From contig OZ287708.1 of assembly GCA_965649825.1 (NCBI GenBank), forward strand, positions 670,780 through 734,779: a stretch of 64,000 bases of DNA. The letters are read 5' to 3'. Within the stretch, counting starts at the first letter, position 1, and each line of letters opens with the position of its first letter. The notes beneath the pieces are model-generated. The model did no database searches. It saw nothing but the letters and a program-made list of their open reading frames with translations, and was not told where the DNA came from. This DNA is from Penicillus capitatus (Eukaryota > Plantae > Chlorophyta). Positions 26,462 through 64,000 of the stretch are shown piece by piece. Position numbers and translations under genes: made by a program.

Positions 26462-27928
26462 TCAGTCCCCCAAGACGACAGGTGTTTCCTCGAAAAGCCG
26501 GACGCCAATTCGAACGTGTCGTGCATTTGCTTCGCTGTACTTGGCGGCAACGTCTTCATTCGGCATGAGAATATCGTCAGCGATTGGCACTCCTTGCTCC
26601 TGAACGTATGAGGCCACAGACTGATCTCCTGAGACGGCACCGGCTTGAAGAGCAGCACCCAGAGCAGCAGATTCGGGTTCCAAAGGAAACCGTAGAGGTA
26701 CTTGGAAAGCATCGGCAATGATGCGTCTCCATAAACGATTTTTGGATCCTCCTCCCACAACTCTGAGCTCCTTGATCGTCATACCCAGCGCTTCCATCCT
26801 CTTAGACCCGTTCAATACCGTGAATGTTGCCCCCTCTAGAGCAGCGCGATAGATCAATCCCGGACGCATTGTGCCAGGAGTGAGGCCGTATAGGACGCCT
26901 CTTGCATGCGGCCAATTTGGTGTCCTTTCTCCAGTGAGGTATGGCAGAAAGCTCACTCCTTGACACCCGATCGGTTCTTTTTCGGCGAGGGCAGTCAACT
27001 CCTCGTGGCTGAGGCTGAATCCTCGCTTCACCTCTTCCACCACTCCAGTACAGCTGATAGTGCAGACCAGTGGCATCCATCGATCCGTGGCATCACAGAA
27101 TTCACACACAACACCCGTCTTATCAAGAATGGGTTTCGCCGAGCAGCCAAACAGACAAGCAGAAGTGCCCAGAGAGAGAACGACAGTCCCATCTGTGACC
27201 GCACCGGCACCCAGGGCACTCATCATGTTATCTCCTGAACCGGGCGAGACGATGACATCTGTCGACAGACCGAATGCCTCTGCCGCTGCAGGTGTCAACC
27301 TACCGATCACTGCATTTGAGTCGACAAGGGGAGGAATCTTGTCAGCCAAAGAGGGATCGACCAGATCGAGCACCTCCCGATCAAAACACTTTTTCAAAAT
27401 GTCCAGACCTCCAACTCCACTGGCATCTCCACACTCCATGCACATTCTCCCTGTGAGCCTGTAGTTGATATAATCATGTGGCAGTAACACATGTTTCAGT
27501 CGGGCGTAGTTCTCAGGCTCATTGTTCTTCATCCACAGAATCTTCGTCAGTGTAATGGAAGGGACCATGACATGGCCGAGTTTCTCTGAGAGTTCTGCCG
27601 CTTCTTTGCTGCTCTCCACATCGCACCATAGTTTTGCAGGTCGAATGATTTCGTTTTCCTCATCGAGAGCCACGAGGCCATGCTGCTGTCCACTCACTCC
27701 AATGCCCCGAATGGCACTCCGATCTTCAATTTTCTCAAGAATACAATGCACTGTCTCCTGACATGCAGCAAACCATGTCTCCGGGTGTTGTTCTGCCCGT
27801 CCCGGGACATCGGTAGAGAGCAATCCGTAGCTAACAGAGGCACGTGCCACTACCACTCTGTTTTCGTCGTCATAGAGGATCGCTTTAGTGCCTTGTGTTC
27901 CAACATCTAACCCGATCAAGAGTGGCAT
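26462..27928 (-). CDS. xylB: xylulokinase, bacterial XylB type (FGGY family), intronless
   Basis: IGLDVGTQGTKA, GIGVSGQQHGLV, RPAKLWCD, LLPHDYINY, GDNMMSALG, PYLTGERTP, VVGGGSKN..WRRIIAD. An alternative upstream ATG lies at 27982. Confidence 0.92.
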   Translation of the reverse strand: MPLLIGLDVGTQGTKAILYDDENRVVVARASVSYGLLSTDVPGRAEQHPETWFAACQETVHCILEKIEDRSAIRGIGVSGQQHGLVALDEENEIIRPAKLWCDVESSKEAAELSEKLGHVMVPSITLTKILWMKNNEPENYARLKHVLLPHDYINYRLTGRMCMECGDASGVGGLDILKKCFDREVLDLVDPSLADKIPPLVDSNAVIGRLTPAAAEAFGLSTDVIVSPGSGDNMMSALGAGAVTDGTVVLSLGTSACLFGCSAKPILDKTGVVCEFCDATDRWMPLVCTISCTGVVEEVKRGFSLSHEELTALAEKEPIGCQGVSFLPYLTGERTPNWPHARGVLYGLTPGTMRPGLIYRAALEGATFTVLNGSKRMEALGMTIKELRVVGGGSKNRLWRRIIADAFQVPLRFPLEPESAALGAALQAGAVSGDQSVASYVQEQGVPIADDILMPNEDVAAKYSEANARHVRIGVRLFEETPVVLGD

Positions 27929-28044
27929 GATTTCAGGTCGTGCTTCGACGACGGTTGTTCGAAGAGGTTGATGCACGTCCATTTCGCGGTGGACTTCGCA
28001 TTTTGGCGGTCATCTTGCTAGGCGGGTTCGAAGAGTGACAGAGG

Positions 28045-55723: not shown

Positions 55724-58700
55724 ATGGACATCTATGTACCGAATCTCGAGTATTTTGCAAGAAAGGGATGCGGAGGACGATTGAGGAAGTTAACAGAGGC
55801 AATGCCGGCTTCATATCGGCTTAGAGAGCTCGTGGCTTTCTGGAGAGCGTTCAGCTTCATTCTCGACAGAAACTGGAAGGAGGCGGGCAGACGTTCCGTC
55901 ATTTTGGCGATATCCGAAGGTGTTTGTGATACACCAGGCTTATCTGGCTTTTGAAGATCTACCGACCACAGCCGAAACGCGGTCTGCAACAGTAGCGGCA
56001 ATGTTGCTGTGTGGCGGAAAGGCAGAAAGGGCGGATGACGAAACTGCTCGAGATCTCGCTCATCGCTTGCATGTCTCGCCCTCGTTTCTCTAAGTGTTAG
56101 ACGAAAGCGGGTTTCTCTTTTAGTTGGAGCGAGACGCATTGAGTGTACCGGGAAGAATTCTCTTAGCGAAATTCTATTGGTTCTCTGGACAGCACGACAA
56201 TGCTCGTGTCGTTGTAGGCGACGCAGCCGAAGAAGACAGCAGTTATCTTTCGCTGAAGGGTACGCGTCTGCTCGTGCGGCACGTTTGAATTATCGCCGTG
56301 CTCGAAGGATCGATTCTTCTGTGGGAATTAGAGGAAGCGTGTGGGGATCGTCGAGCATTGGAAAAGGCAAGACAGGCAATCGCTGCATTCGACACCGCAT
56401 TCCATAGAGATCCTTCAGATCCTGAGGTCTGCATGCAACAACGCCCTTTTTAGGTTCACTCTCCTGCAGGTACTACTAGGCAGAAGCAAGGCACATAGGT
56501 ACGGGCAAAACTTGAATATATCTTTGGAACTGAATGAAGAGGTATTAGAGCGCACAGGATTTCTGGTAGATAACCCCCTCACCGAAACGTGGTCATGGTG
56601 CAGATATGCTCACGTTTCAGTGATCTCTATGAAGCCAGGATCGAGTACATGTGGTGTCTCATAGCCCTTCGTCGTTGGAAAGATGTCATCGATTATATCA
56701 CACACTTCTTCCTTGAAGATGAAGAGGGACCGCTCTACATCGAGGGCCTCATTGTCAAAGGTGAGTCGACTTTGAGATACTGAGACGTGATGCTGGAATG
56801 AATAATATCTTTTCAGGTCTGTACGAAGTAATCTTCTGTGCAAACAATCAGGCTGCTTGCCAAACCATCCAATCTCTTGTGGCGGTTTTAACACGCCAAG
56901 AACCGAATTGCGCATCCCTCTGGAGAAGAATCGTGCGGCCGTTCATTTCAGGAATGCCTTTAAGGAACGCTGGTGTTGTTAGACACGTGTCTTCTGCAGT
57001 GTGTCAGGAAATAGCGAAGAACTGATGCATGCTCTTATACATGTCAGCAATGCAGCTCTCAGGCTCGTTCCAGAAGAAGATAGAATCTTGAATGCATGAT
57101 TCTGTACAGATGATCGGTCCATTGTGCGAAGCTCATGTTCTGTAGGAAATAGAATTGGCAAAACTGCTTCTCTATGTCGGGCGTTCCAAAGAGGCAATCA
57201 GTGTCCTGCAGAAGATTCCCGATAACAATCTCCCGGATCATGTTGAGACGGAACGATTGTGTGTCCTTATCGAACTTCATGCGATCATTGGAAACCGTGA
57301 GGAAGCTGAGCTGCACACGGATGTCTTGACAGAAAAGACCAGCAACAATAGCTTCGATTTGAACCTTCTTCCGCACCTCAAAGCACTCCTCGATGTGAGC
57401 ACAGAGCAAGATCCAGCGCAAGTGACAAAGGAACTTTCTATGAGCGAGCACCGTTAGCTGTGGTGTCTACAGATGACGAGAAGTTTGGAAAATGCGTTTC
57501 GGACAACAACGCAGTGTCTGACCGGAGCCGTCGTTCACGAGACTTGCTTAATGGAGGCAAACATGACACGACTCTTGATGTTGATTCGGGCAGTTCTTGA
57601 AAGAGTGATCGGCGTTGAACCTCATAGTATCCTGGATCCGCCATCTCCGCTCCTCGAAAAAACTGTACGGTGCGATTAAATCCGGCAAAAATGCGTTCTA
57701 GATTAGGGAGCTCCATTGGCAGGGCCTTGCAAAATTGTCTTTGTGTTTTTCCGGGGCACTTCGAGCTGCAATACACACTTGCAGTGGCATATTTCATCGG
57801 CAGAGATTTCGAGATGGCCTTGGATACCCTCCTGGATATCGATTATCTACATCACACAGTCCCCTGGACGCATTTTTTTAGAGCAGCGATTTACTACGAG
57901 ATGCACAAGTCAAACAATTCTCCACAGGACAGGGCATCTTTCTTCAACAAGATGAAGGGAGCGATGGGATCGGCAGTTGCCATGGACTGCGGTATTCAAA
58001 ACTCCCTTCCATTTCTTGTCTTCGAGGCGAAATGTCGTATCCTGGAAAACGACTTTTTAGCGGCTGAAGAGGTACATCAACTGCGAAATTCGGTGCACAT
58101 GCATGTGAAGATGCCCCGTGGTTCTGGAACTAGATTCTTGAGTCACTGGTCCGGCAAGAGCCAGGAAGCAGCAAAGTGCAAAAATTACCTGCCATAGTGC
58201 TTTACAACAAGCTCGACGCACACCTGCTTCTCATAGATGTACTCTCAAGGCTCGACAAGCGAGACAGTCTGCTCGAAGTAAGCGAGTGATCTTTCTGTAT
58301 CCTCTTCTGATATGTGGCCGAGAAGACGCTGAGACTGGCACGTCAGCAGATACTATATCTATCGGACCGTGTGAAAGTACGTATAGTAGAAATAGAGCTG
58401 GAAAAGACTGTAGGACACAAAATGCCGAGAGAGGAGAACAGTGATATCGATTCGATTGTGATCCGAGCGAGAGTTGCTCTGGCACTGTATATCCGGGAAG
58501 GGAACACACGTGCACTGGTCGAATCCATTTCGGAGATTGCAGTGAGCAGGCACCGCGATCGGAGACTCCGTCATGCATTGCGCTTTAGGCACACCATCCC
58601 TGTTACGAAACGCAGTCTATCCTCGGAAATTGCCTGGAAATGCTGTTCGACTTTGAAGGCGCCATCGAGGCAGTTCGAAGAGGATTGGAGTTTAAACCAA

Positions 58701-60731
58701 AGGACATTCGGCTGCTGAAGAAAATGGCAGAGTTACATGCCACTGTTCACCAGTTCGAAGTCTGTCTTCATCTGCCTTGTAGCCGGCCCATCTATCATAA
58801 GGTCTGCAGGATGTGGTTGGATTCTGCAACAAACTGTGTAAGTATGCCTCGGAGAATACTCGACTGCACGTGGAACTGGGTGCACTCTGTCTTCGTAACG
58901 GACAGTTTCGGCAGGCTATCGATATTCTGAATCGGACGAAGATCAAGGCTGCACTGCCGAGTCAAAGATCTTTAAACATCGACAGGCTCGTTCGTTCACG
59001 TGTGCCACTGATTTTCAAACACTTCTTTCCGTCCAGATTGGTATTCCTCTCTGAAGCTTACGGCGAATCCGGGGACCACGATGGAGGACTGACAGCAATG
59101 GAAGACGGCATCCGACTGCAGGAAGAGCTGCTGACGGACATCTGTAGCCGCCTCATCGCCATCCCTGAAATCGTTACCCAGCAGAGGATGAAGACGGCCC
59201 AATTGCTGACGAGTTTTGGGCACCGTTGTAGGAAAAACCGAAGATTGGAAGAGGTAACAGATGAGAGCTGCTTGAGGCATTCAATGACGTTCCACAAAAG
59301 GCGAAAGGCCTTTACAGGCGAGCCGTAGCGAGCTGTGAGATGAGTATACAAGCACGAGAATGTTTGGTCGATATGCTCCTTCTCGATGGAAACATCAAAG
59401 AAGCGGAGCAACAGGTCGAGAGTATACCCAAGTTGCAATTCGAAAGCAAAGAGGCCTGTTTTCTGAATGCTTACATCTTGTTACACAAAGTACTTCAAGC
59501 CATCCTGAGTAGTTGAAGCGATTTAGAAGCTAGGGTCGATATCCGGATGCCATCGATGCTTTAAAGGTGTTACTGAAGAAATTCCCTCGGTGTCCAGATG
59601 CCATCGAGCTGATGATTCGTGTTCTTCGCCTCTCTGGCCGTTCTGGAGAAATGGAGCCGTATGCGGATACGTTACTGCGTGATTCGCCTGAATGGGCCTT
59701 TTGCTCTGGTCTCCGTGAGAGATACAAGGGCAACAAGTTGTCAGCACTTCGTCTCTTTGCGCGAGCAAAGGAAGATGAGAAGCTGCGCGAATCCGCCATT
59801 TTTGAAATGGTCGAGCTGGTATTGGATATGGACTGTCTGTGGCGTCTCTGGAAGAATTGTGCTGGCGATCGCGATGAAGAGAGAAGGCAGAAAGCGGCTC
59901 GTGTGCTTCTCGATCAAGTAAAATCGACAAAACTCCGTCCGCTGCTAGCATTGCCAATCAGATCGTCCATACAGAGGACTCTAGCATTCGCTATATCGTT
60001 CTCAGTAGCTACACACAGATGCTGACGCCTTCTGAAGCACAGAACGCCACATCAACGCTATCGAGCCTGTCGAAGGACAAAGATGTACCCAAGGCTCCAG
60101 TTCTTCTGGCTCTAGCTATTGGCTACCAGCGGATGGGAGACGCGCACAGGGCCAAACACGAGCTGAGAAAACTGCAGGTGAAGATCGGCCTGATCGGCAA
60201 GTATCGCACCGGACTATCTTTAGAGACTGCGATTCAACTACGCCTATCGCAGCGATTTTGAGAGAGCATCTGTGCTCCTTGCTCTGCATGGAGTGAGAGA
60301 AGGTGACGCCTGGAGAAGTGCGATCCTACTGAATAACAGCTTCGACGCTGCGGACAGGAAAACTCGAACAAGCTCGAAGCCTGTGCGAAAAAGCTCTTCA
60401 ATTAAACAGCTCATGCGCACCGGCATTTGAGACATTGGGAAGGATAGCAGAGAATCAGAGATCCTTTGGCGAGGCAGCAGATCGTTACTCGACAGCCTGG
60501 AGGTGTGTCGTCTGGGTCCACAGGATGAAGGTCAAAAGTGACAGCGGTGTGTTTGGTAGACTGTCTGGCAACGACACCCCTGCATACGGCCACAATCTCG
60601 TGCACTGCCTCATTCAGGCAGGGGAGTGTGCGAGTGCTATCGATGTCTGCTCACGTCTTACGCACGGCACTGAACACTATGCACTTTTGAGAGACATGAT
60701 GATTAAAGCGACCGACGGCCTTAGGGGTTGA
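55724..60731 (+). CDS. IFT139: TPR protein IFT139/TTC21B-like (IFT-A), many exons
   Basis: About 5 kb of TPR-like exons. N-terminal YFARKG...LVAFWRAF, C-terminal WEFMGRIAENQRSFGEAADRYSTAW...PAYGHNLVHCLIQAG...AIDVC. Confidence 0.72.
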
Positions 60732-61096: not shown

Positions 61097-64000
61097 TGAC
61101 TGCGGCCTCTTACCAGCAAAACGACAGGTAAGAAGACAGCCGCCTCGCATCCATAGCAAGACGGCAGGTAAAACGACTGCAGCGTCCAGGCAGTAGGGCA
61201 GCAGGTAAGGCGAGCGCCGCCACGCATCCACGGCGAGGCAGCAGTCAAGACGACTTCGCCAGGCTTAGAAGTCGCAGGTAATGCGACAGCCGCCTCGCAT
61301 CCACGGCGAGGCGGCAGGTATGACGGGTTCGGCCTCAGATCAACTCCAACCCGACAGATAAGGCGACTTCGTCTTCCGGGCTTAGAAGTCGCAGGTAATG
61401 CGACAGCCGCCTCGCATCCACGACGAGGCAGCAGGTAAGACGACTTCGTCTTCCGGGCTTAGAAGTCGCAGGTAATGCGACAGCCGCCTCGCATCCACGA
61501 CGAGGCAGCAGGTAAGACGACTTCGCCAGGCTTAGAAGTCGCAGGTAATGCGACAGCCGCCTCGCATACACGACGAGGCAGCAGGTAAGACGACTTCGCT
61601 AGGCTTCAAGGTCGCAGATGGTGCGACAGCCGCCTCGCATACACGACGAGGCAGCAGGTAAGACGACTTCGCTAGGCTTCAAGGTCGCAGATGGTGCGAC
61701 AGCCGCCTCGCATCTGCGGCGAGGCGGCAGGTAGGTCGACTTCGGCCTCCGGCATCCAAGTCGCAGGAAGGCGACAGCCGCCTCGCATCCACGACGAGGC
61801 GGCAGGTGGATCGGCTTCGGGCAGCAGGTCGCAGGAAGGCGACAGCCGCCTCGCATCCACGACGAGGCAGCAGGTAAGACGACTTCGCCAGGCTTAGAAG
61901 TCGCAGGTAATGCGACAGCCGCCTCGCATCCACGGCGAGGCGGCGGGTAAGACGACTTCGCCAGGCTTCAAGGTCGCAGATAGTGCGACAGCCGCCTCGC
62001 ATCCACGGCGAGGCGGCAGGTAAGACGACTTCGGCATCCAGCTCGCAGGTAAGAAGAGAGCCGCCTCGCATCCACAACGAGGCAGCAGGTAGATCGGCTT
62101 CATCCTCTGGGCGGCAGACGGCAGGTAGGTAGGCAGGTAGGTAGGTAGACAGCCGCCTCGCATCTACGACAAGGCGGCAAGTAGGACGACTGCGGCATCT
62201 AGACGTAAAGGTCGCAGGTGTATCGATAGCCGCCTTGCATCCAGGGCGAGACAGCAGGTATGACGACTGCAACCCCGATCGGCGAGGCCGCAGTTTTAGC
62301 GACAGTCGCCTCGCATCATCCTTTGTAAGGCGGCAGGTAGGTCGATAGACGCCTCCGATGATCGTCAAAGCGGCAAGTTTGCCGACAGCCGCCTCGTATC
62401 CACGGGGAGGCGGCAAGTAGGTTGACAGCTGCCTCACATTCACGACGAGGCAGCAGGTAAGACGACTTCGGCCTCTGGGCATCCAGGTCGCAGGTGGTGC
62501 GACAGCCGCCTCGCATCCGCGGCAAGGCGGCAGGTAGAGCGACTGCGGCCTCCGGGCTTCGACGTCGCAGGAAGTGCGACAGCCGCCTCGCATCCGCGGC
62601 AAGGCGGCAGGTAGATCGACATAGGCCTCCGGGCTTAAAGATCGCACGCAGGCAGTGCGACAGCCGCCTTGCATCCACGGCAAGGCGGCGAGTAAGATGA
62701 CTGCAGCGTTCAGGCAGCAAGCAGAGCAGCAGGTTAGGCGGCGGCTGCCTTGCATTCACAGCAAGGCAGCAAGTAGGTCCACTGCGGCCTTCGGGCTTCC
62801 CAGGTCGCAGGTAGGTCGACCGCCGCTTTACATTCGCAGCAAGGCGGCCAGTAGACGACAGGCTCCTCGTATTCTCGACGAGGCGGCAGGTAAGTCAGTT
62901 GCAGCGTCCAGGCAGTAGGGCGACAGGTAAGGCGACCTCCGCCTCGCATCCAGGGCGAGGCGGCAGGTAGATCGACTTCGGCATCCAGGTCGCAGTCAGC
63001 GCGACAGCCGCCTCGCATATCCGGCGAGGCGGGGCGTAAGACGACTGCTGCATCCAGGCAGTAGAGCAGCAGGTAAGGCGACCGCCGCCTCACATTCACG
63101 GCGTGGCGGCAAGTAGGACGACTGCGGCATCTAGACGTAAAGGTCGCAGGTGGATCGATAGCCGCCTTGCATCCAGGGCGAGACAGCAGGTATGACGACT
63201 GCGACCCCGATCAGCGAGGCCGCAGTTTTAGCGACAGCAGCCTTGCATCCACGGCGAGGCGGCAAGAGAGTCTTCGTCCTCCAGGCGGCAGATATGTAGA
63301 CAGCCTCCTCGCATCCACGGCAAGGCGATAGGTAGACAGACTTCGGCCTCCAGGCAGCACGGCAGAGGGAAAAATGACTGCGGTCTTCTGGTGACAAAAC
63401 GGCAGGTAGATCGGCAGTCGCCCCGCATACACGGGCGAGGCAGCAGATATGACGACTACGGCCTCAGATCAACTCCAAGTCGGCGGGTAGATTGACTTCG
63501 GGATCCGGGCATCCAGGTCGCAGGTAGTGCGACAGCCGCCTTGCATCCACGACGAGGCGGCGAGTCAGACGACTCCGACCTTCGGCCATCCAGGTCGCAG
63601 ACTGTTCGACAGCCGCCTCGCATCCACGGCAAGGCGGCAAGTAGACGACTGCCGCCTCGTATCCTCGACGAGGCGGCAGGTAGGTCGACAGAGTCCTCCG
63701 GTCTTCAATGTCGCAGGTAGAGCATCCGCCGCCTCGCATACACGGCGAGGCAGCAGGTAAGTCGATAGACGCCTCCAGTAATCTCCAAGAAGTCGGCAGG
63801 TGGAAAGAGCTGCAGCTTCCAGTCAGTACGGCAGCATGTAGAGAGACTCTGCAGCTTTCGATGAGCAGACGGCATGTTAGGATACTCCAGTCTTGAGGCG
63901 GTAAGACAAGCAGGTAGGACACGACAGCTCCGCACAGGAAGATCGACAGGTGGCATCCTCTGGACAGCAGAAAGCAGGTAAGACACGGCAGCCTCCGTGC
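61097..64000. repeat. GC-rich tandem satellite, unit 68-77 bp (mode 73), palindromic, continues off window
   Basis: GCGACAGCCGCCTCG unit starts at 61400, 61477, 61550, 61623, 61696, 61771, 61839, 61912 and 61985. Units become more diverged toward the right. Confidence 0.95.

Follow-up and report, generated by a model that had tools for sequence, protein, structure and literature searches.

A palindromic tandem array downstream of a proline-rich gene

The DNA considered here is a 64,000-nt stretch of contig OZ287708.1 (positions 670,780 to 734,779, forward strand) from the Penicillus capitatus assembly GCA_965649825.1, hereafter "the window". Its last 2.9 kb, from 61,097 to 64,000, consist of a tandem array of GC-rich units containing short palindromes. 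This array is enclosed by genes, which come within ~400 bp of it on one side and ~850 bp on the other. The distal neighbour encodes an IFT139-like protein and reaches its stop codon ~370 bp before the array edge; the proximal neighbour, just past the end of the window, is a gene for a proline-rich (Pro-rich) protein that lies on the − strand and reads into the array. Matched through an intact kinase gene of a single exon, the window corresponds to ~198–262 kb of an 894,450-bp contig (ENA ERZ25074695, ctg340467_45x_l), in which the array is located at ~259–262 kb, and positions past 64,000 are given below in window-equivalent coordinates, i.e., the window numbering carried into the next 25 kb of contig. 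As argued in the following, the array is most likely the distal 2.9 kb of a ~3.5-kb non-coding minisatellite in the 3′ flank of this lineage-specific Pro-rich gene.

Tandem Repeats Finder (TRF) reported periods of 73 and 77 bp and half-periods of 37 and 40 bp in this region, which confirms the tandem array described by a first-pass annotation made from the sequence letters (Table 1). The start and the continuous filling of the array stood as annotated, with the first match to a hidden Markov model (HMM) of the unit at 61,126. Its end at 64,000 did not, as hairpin units reach ~64,100 and related 59-bp and degenerate modules ~64,600. Beyond the hairpin units, a 59-bp repeat (~64,218–64,446, 3.9 copies, 100% identical) is followed by degenerate TTTACCTGCTGCC...GGAGG modules that reach up to the 3′ untranslated region (UTR) of the gene. 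At the opposite edge, farthest from the gene, diverged half-units are found together with one 117-bp unit that carries an unrelated insert, and the homogeneous core that follows displays a higher-order TRF period of 289 bp (84% matches). Overall, the + strand of the array is poor in T (A 23%, C 30%, G 32%, T 15%).

With an HMM built from sequence only, 211 half-units bearing hairpin A were retrieved across seven arrays (2.0–3.6 kb each), and the consensus of the full unit, based on 121 distinct units, is CGACAGCCGCCTCGCATCCACGGCGAGGCGGCAGGTAGGACGACTGCGGCCTCCAGGCTTCAAGGTCGCAGGTAGGG. The unit length of 73 bp originally proposed is correct for the core of the window array (6 spacings) but not for the family, in which 77 bp is the commonest length (49 spacings in all seven arrays together). 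Length variation resides mostly in the B segment of the unit, as previously noted, and an origin of the unit from a duplicated half-unit is supported as well, with a half-unit of ~36–40 bp: 23 neighbouring A hairpins lie 39–40 bp from one another, and the sequence of the B segment, TGCGGCCTCC, is similar to that of an A arm, AGCCGCCTCG, in decayed form. The building block is a module of ~38–40 bp that reads, in gene sense, GTCG-NNN-TACCTGC followed by a GC-rich palindrome of 9–10 bp. Each 77-bp unit, or 73-bp unit in the local core, is built from two such modules, in one of which the palindrome has decayed. Head-to-tail units with periods of 37/40 and 73/77 bp, in arrays of 2.0–3.6 kb, fall within the ~10–100 bp per unit and 0.5–30 kb per array expected of a minisatellite.

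Two elements of the unit stand out. The constant linker GCAGGTANNNCGAC (at most one mismatch), which on the gene-sense strand reads GTCGNNNTACCTGC, is present far above the 0.6 occurrences expected from dinucleotide-preserving shuffles, and hairpin A, searched as GCCGCCTCG-N9-CGAGGCRGC with at most two mismatches, is found at ~31 sites against none expected. The arms of this hairpin (GCCGCCTCG/CGAGGCGGC) form a stem of 9–10 bp around a loop of 7–9 nt, within which CAT is nearly invariant. Conservation across the family is accordingly concentrated in the linker (GCAGGTA-NNN-CGAC, twice per unit), the hairpin-A arms (81–97% per column), and the loop CAT, with one loop T unchanged in 210 of the 211 units. 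The first-pass annotation had further proposed a second hairpin (B, CGACTTC/GAAGTCG, 7 bp) and a structural switch in which the end of B pairs instead with the following linker. Both are regularly intact in the core units only. In a set of 134 full units, B-region stems reach at best 4–6 bp in most cases and often involve other bases, and the GTCGC-7 nt-GCGAC helix is intact in 44. Neither was predicted on either strand by RNAalifold from 26 window units. The two hairpins and their switch are thus not a conserved property of the family, and this initial description of the repeat, confirmed in part, was largely right for the core units. No match to an Rfam covariance model was obtained at the gathering score, either in the window or in loci L002–L004, and a tRNA scan was also negative.

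Repeat arrays accompany an orphan gene family

In the Pro-rich gene, a TATA-like box lies at ~66.2 kb, the coding region spans ~65.8–64.85 kb, and introns measure ~48 nt (window-equivalent positions). A conserved CTATAAAGG box is located ~415 nt upstream, the 5′ part of the gene contains a GTGAGT intron, and a final 48-nt intron (GTAAGT...TGTAG) precedes the end of the protein (...SGECVRIEDWSA) and the stop codon. From there, the T-rich 3′UTR passes gradually, without a break, into the repeat modules. Across eight copies of the − strand reading frame, variable columns are distributed 27/16/42 over the three codon positions, a bias absent from control windows upstream; all eight share a conserved N-terminus, and C-terminal motifs are kept in paralogues, in one case together with the stop codon. 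The codon-position signal, the conserved ends, and the introns together indicate that the Pro-rich gene is real. Its product is a protein of ~320–390 aa that is proline-rich, HRGP-like, and an orphan: a profile search of the 15-member gene family against Pfam and PDB revealed no relative. All 15 members were found in ENA metagenome assemblies, and their alignment retains 27 invariant columns.

In every copy of the gene examined (at least 10), tandem repeats directly follow the stop codon, in one orientation. The pairing of gene tail and array was observed in the copy next to the window array (copy A), in a second copy farther along the same contig (copy B), and in loci L003 (twice), L005, L006 (twice), and L007, which are homologous loci from co-occurring genomes at 7–16x coverage. 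Copies A and B are 94% identical over 65,600–66,788 and 83,049–84,243, promoter included, and the non-satellite sequence that follows both arrays is collinear as well (64,694–65,277 vs 82,339–82,921, 82% identical). Paralogues on other contigs display the same arrangement with other repeats. On a 572-kb contig (L008), two paralogues are each followed by arrays of 42/84, 50, and 147 bp, and on an 845-kb contig (L009), one paralogue is followed by 35/71-bp and 98-bp arrays. A distant member from another sample (L010) is accompanied by only 3.6 copies of a 35–38-bp unit (TTGCTGTTTTACTGCGGAGGCTG...) and a short A-rich hairpin repeat.

Orientation is equally strict at the level of the motif. On the + strand, the window array carries 38 copies of CAGGTA and none of TACCTG, and in other arrays TACCTG lies strictly in gene sense (21/0, 6/0, and 24/0). 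The L008 arrays share the architecture, i.e., TACCTG, then a 9-bp GC helix with a 6-nt loop, yet they use another stem, CTGACGGCC/GGCCGTCAG. Paralogues with different repeat units have diverged to ~55% protein identity and retained the same grammar of TACCTG plus a 9-bp GC palindrome. The most conserved 32-mer, spanning hairpin A and the linker, had no exact match in JGI metagenomes, IMG/VR, or GTDB genomes, and a literature search found no description of such a repeat.

Some arrays also differ in their recent history and in what separates them from the stop codon. Behind one Pro-rich paralogue, a 147-bp unit is repeated 14.8 times at 99% identity (L008 12,019–14,193), which denotes a very recent expansion. 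The short repeat between the stop codon and the hairpin array differs from copy to copy, with a period of 59, 50, or 35/71 bp (L004 9,954–10,182, equivalent to ~64,218–64,446; L008 11,381–11,814; L009 11,324–11,634). These short repeats fold worse than dinucleotide shuffles (z of +2 to +3.8), and look selected or built to be unstructured.

The oriented CAGGTA motif can also be read as an array of antisense 5′ splice sites. Transcripts reading through from the IFT139-like gene would then carry CAG/GTAAG, a juxtaposed acceptor and donor (GCAG/GT), on the + strand, load U1 snRNP, and be retained, recursively spliced, or degraded. Thirty-eight of the 48 CAGGTA in the window are inside the array, all on the + strand; the motif is kept in all arrays of the host genus; and the host uses GTAAGT, GTGAG, and GTAAAA donors with introns of ~44–48 nt, close to the 33–40-bp half-units. 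Juxtaposed CAG/GTAAG at near-intron-length intervals is indeed reminiscent of recursive splice sites or introner-like elements. These, however, are expected on the sense strand of a transcribed gene, whereas the motif here is antisense to the gene reading into the array, is not part of a known transcript, and is not dispersed in genes. Position −1 is G in only 61% of cases, +4 is variable, and GTAAG is not enriched elsewhere in the window. The motif is not kept in the distant relative L010, which has TTTTACTG, the complement of which (CAGTAAAA) lacks GT, and at copy B no convergent gene feeds + strand transcripts into the array. We therefore regard this explanation as very improbable.

Turnover of the arrays and structural polymorphism

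Comparison of the homologous loci indicates fast turnover. Co-occurring genomes share the unique flank at 86–90% identity, and their arrays can be aligned collinearly only in part, the best collinear block (62,500–62,988 vs the L005 array) being 91.5% identical. An array that starts in the 3′UTR region, beside genes, and whose copy number and order turn over this quickly behaves as minisatellites do. Even between the window and the public ENA record, differences are found only inside the array, the upstream sequence being identical: they comprise six A<->G transitions (61,035; 61,200; 61,500; 61,507; 61,759; 61,945) and a 2-bp indel at 61,269, pointing to polishing or to heterogeneity between haplotypes within the repeat.

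The distal neighbour of the array is not constant either. The TTC21/IFT139-like gene occupies this place in the 45x contig, whereas the 7–9x contigs L003, L005, and L006 carry a COG4 region there. The distal regions compared were positions 1–5,550 of L005 (reverse complement), 14,000–19,458 of L003 (reverse complement), and 56,300–60,731 of the window. These different neighbours indicate that the array edge coincides with a rearrangement breakpoint, and the gene-plus-array cassettes sit in a structurally polymorphic, segmentally duplicated neighbourhood. A young Ty3-like retrotransposon with long terminal repeats (LTRs) lies on the far side of the Pro-rich gene (Table 1). Its two LTRs of 239 nt are 100% identical, and the element has no counterpart in L003 and L005, which marks it as an insertion polymorphism among the co-occurring genomes.

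A multi-copy cassette, with copies A and B 94% identical over 1.2 kb including the promoter, in such a polymorphic neighbourhood and with a genuine LTR retrotransposon next door, raises the possibility that gene and array together constitute a mobile element, or that the array is an internal or terminal repeat of a transposon. The cassette itself, however, contains no transposase, reverse transcriptase (RT), integrase, or other Pfam domain, and is bounded neither by inverted repeats of at least 60 nt nor by LTRs, the sole LTR pair being that of the neighbouring retrotransposon. Past the cassette, the flank aligns collinearly with the homologous loci (86–90% identity), and an ordinary TATA promoter, introns, and a signature of purifying selection are found in the gene. 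A mobile origin of this kind is hardly probable.

Coding potential, strand asymmetry, and sequence constraint

The array is non-coding. Long open reading frames (ORFs) do exist on its − strand (358 aa in the window, 392–501 aa in relatives), and a coding repeat was considered and rejected, as the sequence displays no 3-periodicity and contains frame-breaking indels. Substitutions in a collinear homologous block number 28, 21, and 20 in the three mod-3 classes, alongside indels of 1, 2, and 4 nt; the spacings between units number 75, 60, and 56, and unit lengths of 68–84 bp are found in all three classes. Pfam searches of the array ORFs and tail ORFs gave no match, and the length of the − strand ORFs is explained by an A content of only 15% on that strand. 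An 848-aa ORF over the 147-bp array of L008 was likewise set aside as probably spurious, being an R/S-rich reading of 99%-identical units in one frame only.

The two strands of the array differ in their capacity to fold. For the 26 window units, RNAalifold predicts a complete 10-bp helix on the − strand (−19.0 kcal/mol) and a fragmented helix on the + strand (−3.9 kcal/mol). The − strand is the sense strand of the Pro-rich gene reading into the array. Three variable pairs are kept on it as C-G, U.G, or U-A, and most mismatches on the + strand are C.A, corresponding to G.U on the − strand. Sense G.U pairs accordingly outnumber those on the other strand in the window family (190 vs 59), in L008 (18 vs 5), and in L009 (30 vs 2). 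These consensus fold energies leave room for the structured repeat RNA suggested by the first-pass annotation, on the − strand, opposite to the one it had written. An attempt to use TGTAA as a poly(A) landmark that would place the array within a transcript was abandoned, as five of eight control genes have one within 1 kb and the background is 0.54 per kb.

Other observations point to constraint. The GC-rich palindrome, one per unit, shows conservation above chance, and stems are more conserved than loops when CpG sites are set aside, with a non-consensus fraction of 0.077 in non-CpG stem positions vs 0.166 in loop and linker, so that the first-pass annotation is not refuted by its own test of stems against loops. 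The CpG observed/expected ratio of the array is 1.06, i.e., without depletion, and CpG decay was rejected as an explanation for the variable stem positions: the two that vary most are of CpG type, but the symmetric CpGs in the other arm are stable, which points to amplified old variants instead of ongoing decay. In collinear homologous blocks, the substitution rate is 0.045 in the stem and 0.056 in the linker, compared to 0.117 in the loop, 0.102 in the B segment, and ~0.10 in the unique flank (stem and linker 0.051 vs loop and B segment 0.105, Fisher p=0.004). Across 150 distinct units, 87.8% of stem cells are paired, vs 85.5% in shuffles and 28–63% when the partner is slid, and double-change cells number 38 against 12.6 expected, confined to 3–4 inner pairs of the ten.

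Several observations weigh against a functional sense-strand hairpin. Covariation is modest: six of the ten stem pairs vary on one side only, pairs with double changes are no more numerous than in shuffles (412 of 500 reach the observed value), and the association between paired columns is no stronger than that among unpaired loop columns. The sense excess of G.U is largely gone once the three variable sites are left out (50 vs 41), and G>A changes exceed C>T by ~1.8:1 in unpaired columns as well, so that a strand-asymmetric mutation bias could yield the same pairing pattern. The minimum free energy (MFE) of single sequences is only ~2 SD better than that of dinucleotide shuffles, equally on both strands, and a strand call from these MFE z-scores (~−2 on either strand for the window family) was discarded. 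The arrays are largely reshuffled, their best block diverging overall about like the flank (91.5% vs 90% identity), and conversion among units, not selection, could account for both the slower change of stem and linker and the greater conservation of non-CpG stem positions.

An alternative is a neutral, self-propagating DNA satellite without function, in which slippage and unequal exchange expanded a palindromic 3′ flank in this lineage and the consensus is restored by conversion among units, GC-biased conversion, or hairpin-templated repair. Partial collinearity between related genomes, differing distal neighbours in a polymorphic region, covariation no greater than linkage, fold scores that are modest and equal on both strands, and a public record that departs from the window only within the array are all consistent with such a satellite, as is a distant relative that gets by on 3–4 copies. 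Green algae are moreover rich in gene-associated satellites of no known function, and de novo dissemination of these is possible (PMC9940879). Less expected for unconstrained DNA is that paralogues at ~55% identity keep the grammar and the strict orientation with different stems, that loop, B segment, and flank change twice as fast as stem and linker, that one loop T is invariant in all but one of 211 units, and that a compact genome, whose introns are ~45 nt long, retains arrays of several kilobases. We consider a neutral satellite to be a credible alternative, at well below even odds.

Constraint could, on the other hand, act on the DNA duplex. A sequence-specific factor may bind the GCAGGTA-NNN-CGAC motifs in their single orientation, whether or not the palindrome takes part, and the array would then be a polar road-block terminator, insulator, or replication-fork barrier separating closely spaced genes, comparable to the Sal-box or Reb1-type terminator arrays behind rRNA genes. 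The palindromes may otherwise extrude as cruciforms. The most conserved non-palindromic element is a ~14-bp motif of fixed orientation present twice per unit, the stems are kept in sequence and not merely in pairing, and the array lies between convergent genes at copy A and between tandem genes at copy B. Like rRNA terminator arrays (Sal box/TTF-I, Reb1), the array repeats a short oriented motif downstream of a transcription unit, and the GGTAA core of the linker may resemble Reb1/Sal-box sites. Those systems, however, belong to Pol I or to yeast Pol II, and the palindrome has no counterpart in them. In addition, no candidate binding protein is known, paralogous arrays change the sequence of the palindrome, which argues against one sequence-specific palindrome binder, and the strong strand asymmetry of pairing would be meaningless for the recognition of duplex DNA. 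Overall, binding at the DNA level appears improbable.

Genomic setting of the array

The features of the array and of its neighbourhood are listed in Table 1. The first-pass annotation had placed the array at a subtelomeric or centromeric boundary where a dense gene block ends abruptly. The abrupt end of the gene block is an error, as genes resume directly past the array.

Table 1. Position of the array, its parts, and neighbouring features (positions past 64,000 are window-equivalent)
Feature	Position	Strand	Basis or remark
Distal degenerate edge of the array, farthest from the owner gene	61,097–61,378	−	TRF rows with 62–75% matches
Homogeneous core, ~9.8 units of 73 bp (68–77 bp)	61,379–62,091	−	TRF period 73, 85% matches
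12-bp microsatellite (GGCAGGTAGGTA), 2.2 copies, linker-derived, nested in the array	62,120–62,145	.	TRF, 100% matches
Block of 77-bp units, 5.6 copies	62,424–62,859	−	TRF period 77
Proximal, more diverged part, periods of 77 and 39 bp	62,860–64,000	−	TRF
Linker GCAGGTANNNCGAC, 37 copies (at most one mismatch), ~two per unit, single orientation	61,164–63,766	+	Motif search
Hairpin-A palindrome GCCGCCTCG(C)-loop-(G)CGAGGCRGC, ~31 copies	61,139–63,754	.	Motif search, 58 strand-matches vs 0 expected
TTC21/IFT139-like TPR gene, multi-exon, convergent with the array-owning gene, outside the repeat	56,300–60,731	+	ORFs, Pfam ARM_TT21_5th
T-rich 3′UTR, then stop codon of the − strand gene	~64,845	−	Joined contig sequence
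Young Ty3-like LTR retrotransposon	~69,562–74,311 (L004 89–4838)		RT and integrase ORFs between LTRs
Tmemb_14 gene	74.9–76.3 kb		
Second array, same orientation	78.25–81.8 kb		~14 kb past the first
Second copy of the − strand gene, then DUF3419 and BT1 genes	After the second array		

Some centromeric satellites are made of tandem monomers in which short inverted repeats can fold into hairpins or cruciforms, and a GC-rich tandem array with dyad symmetry, in a window that happens to end within it, can suggest such a satellite, or a subtelomeric one, that marks the end of the gene block and folds into cruciforms or a structured RNA. None of the position, size, copy number, and gene density observed here fits a centromere. 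The array is internal to an 894-kb contig, with genes on both sides and beyond, and no telomeric runs (TTAGGG, TTTAGGG, or TTTTAGGG) were found in the 64-kb window or the next 25 kb. In place of one dominant array or cluster per chromosome in a gene-poor region, there are at least two arrays of 2–3.6 kb located ~14 kb apart and others on further contigs, and every array is tied to one gene family. As genes continue past the array, a second array follows, and telomeric repeats are absent, the centromeric or subtelomeric reading is unsupported, and we give it next to no probability. The initial interpretation of the locus hence survives only in part. A GC-rich, dyad-symmetric satellite at the edge of a window is no evidence for a centromere or chromosome end, and this tempting misreading is corrected here. 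Conversely, it is highly probable that the array is a gene-linked 3′-flank minisatellite.

Beyond the array, the window provides some information on the host. Introns inferred by hand are ~44–48 nt long, with GTAAAA, GTGAAG, GTGAGA, and GTAAGT donors, which is unusually short for a chlorophyte and may help to recognize the lineage; they include window positions 59,918–59,961, within the IFT139-like gene in which further introns were inferred, and 60,178–60,345, as well as L004 9,481–9,528. The gene content includes flagellar genes, with HAUS5, Armc9, IFT139/TTC21, and Rrn7 recognized. A single-exon gene for an FGGY/xylulokinase-type kinase (26,462–27,982, − strand) encodes a protein 55–64% identical to green-algal proteins (Symbiochloris, Bryopsis, Chromochloris, Pyramimonas, Coccomyxa) and 50–54% identical to proteins from metagenome-assembled genomes (MAGs) of Planctomycetota. 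Since the best named relatives of the kinase are from green algae, the host is a chlorophyte, and the kinase gene itself could derive from an old bacterium-to-alga transfer common to chlorophytes.

Interpretation and comparison with known systems

Taken together, these results favour, with a probability of about 60% for the explanation as a whole, a non-coding 3′-flank minisatellite of an orphan Pro-rich gene, which would have expanded from a short module and would yield a sense-strand hairpin transcript. The 3–4 module copies of the distant relative L010 can be read as the 3′UTR module before expansion, and tandem amplification of such a module would have given rise to the array in one lineage, with unequal exchange and gene conversion then maintaining and reshuffling it. 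The promoter of the gene is predicted to drive transcription through the array, either as a long 3′UTR or as read-through, and the resulting − strand RNA would bear ~40 stable stem-loops per array. With genes so tightly packed, these stem-loops could act in cis on how 3′ ends are formed, on termination, or on the stability of the transcript. That the sense-strand hairpins are functional as RNA is nonetheless a tentative and somewhat doubtful part of this explanation.

A bolder version would see in the array a natural multi-hairpin 3′UTR, i.e., a functional, transcribed part of the gene with ~40 stem-loops per array, each following UACCUGC, in which the grammar of oriented motif and 9–10-bp GC helix, and not the sequence, is kept across paralogues. 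Such a 3′UTR would offer multivalent binding to an RNA-binding protein, or would control termination or stability in a very compact algal genome; we hold this to be unlikely. UACCUGC corresponds to the end of U1 snRNA that recognizes 5′ splice sites, and a link to a splicing factor is conceivable.

Gene-associated GC-rich minisatellites are a known kind of sequence in green algae, of which this array is a new family. In Chlamydomonas, satellite DNA makes up ~5% of the genomes, and tandem repeats are over-represented in genes (PMC9940879, PMC3887541). The present array resembles the chlorophyte gene-associated satellites (MSAT families, Chlamydomonas reinhardtii v6), which are GC-rich, with monomers of at least 10 bp in kb-sized arrays in or beside genes and not at centromeres, and which are fast-evolving and variable between strains (PMC9940879, PMC3887541). 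Unlike the Chlamydomonas satellites, which are mainly intronic, it invariably occupies the 3′ flank of genes from a single orphan family, in strict orientation, its palindrome and TACCTG grammar is kept across paralogues with different units, and it has no sequence relative in the collections searched.

The closest parallel in mechanism, as an analogy only, is bacterial, namely the REP/BIME elements. These are imperfect palindromes of ~35–40 bp with short constant linkers, which are clustered just after stop codons and are contained in the 3′ end of the mRNA. The algal array shares the palindromes and linkers after stop codons. REPs, however, alternate in orientation, come in few copies as opposed to ~80 modules, and serve as binding sites for IHF, gyrase, and Pol I; the two are not homologous, and transcription of the algal array is a prediction.

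Overall, this analysis adds a documented, gene-family-specific 3′-flank minisatellite in an uncultured green alga. If its regularities, namely strict orientation, a shared grammar with different stems, slower evolution of stem and linker, and sense-strand-specific pairing, reflect function, the array would represent a rare eukaryotic case of a repeat array conserved in architecture, and not in sequence, behind a gene family. The array would then correspond, in nature, to engineered multi-hairpin tags and to the REP clusters of bacteria.

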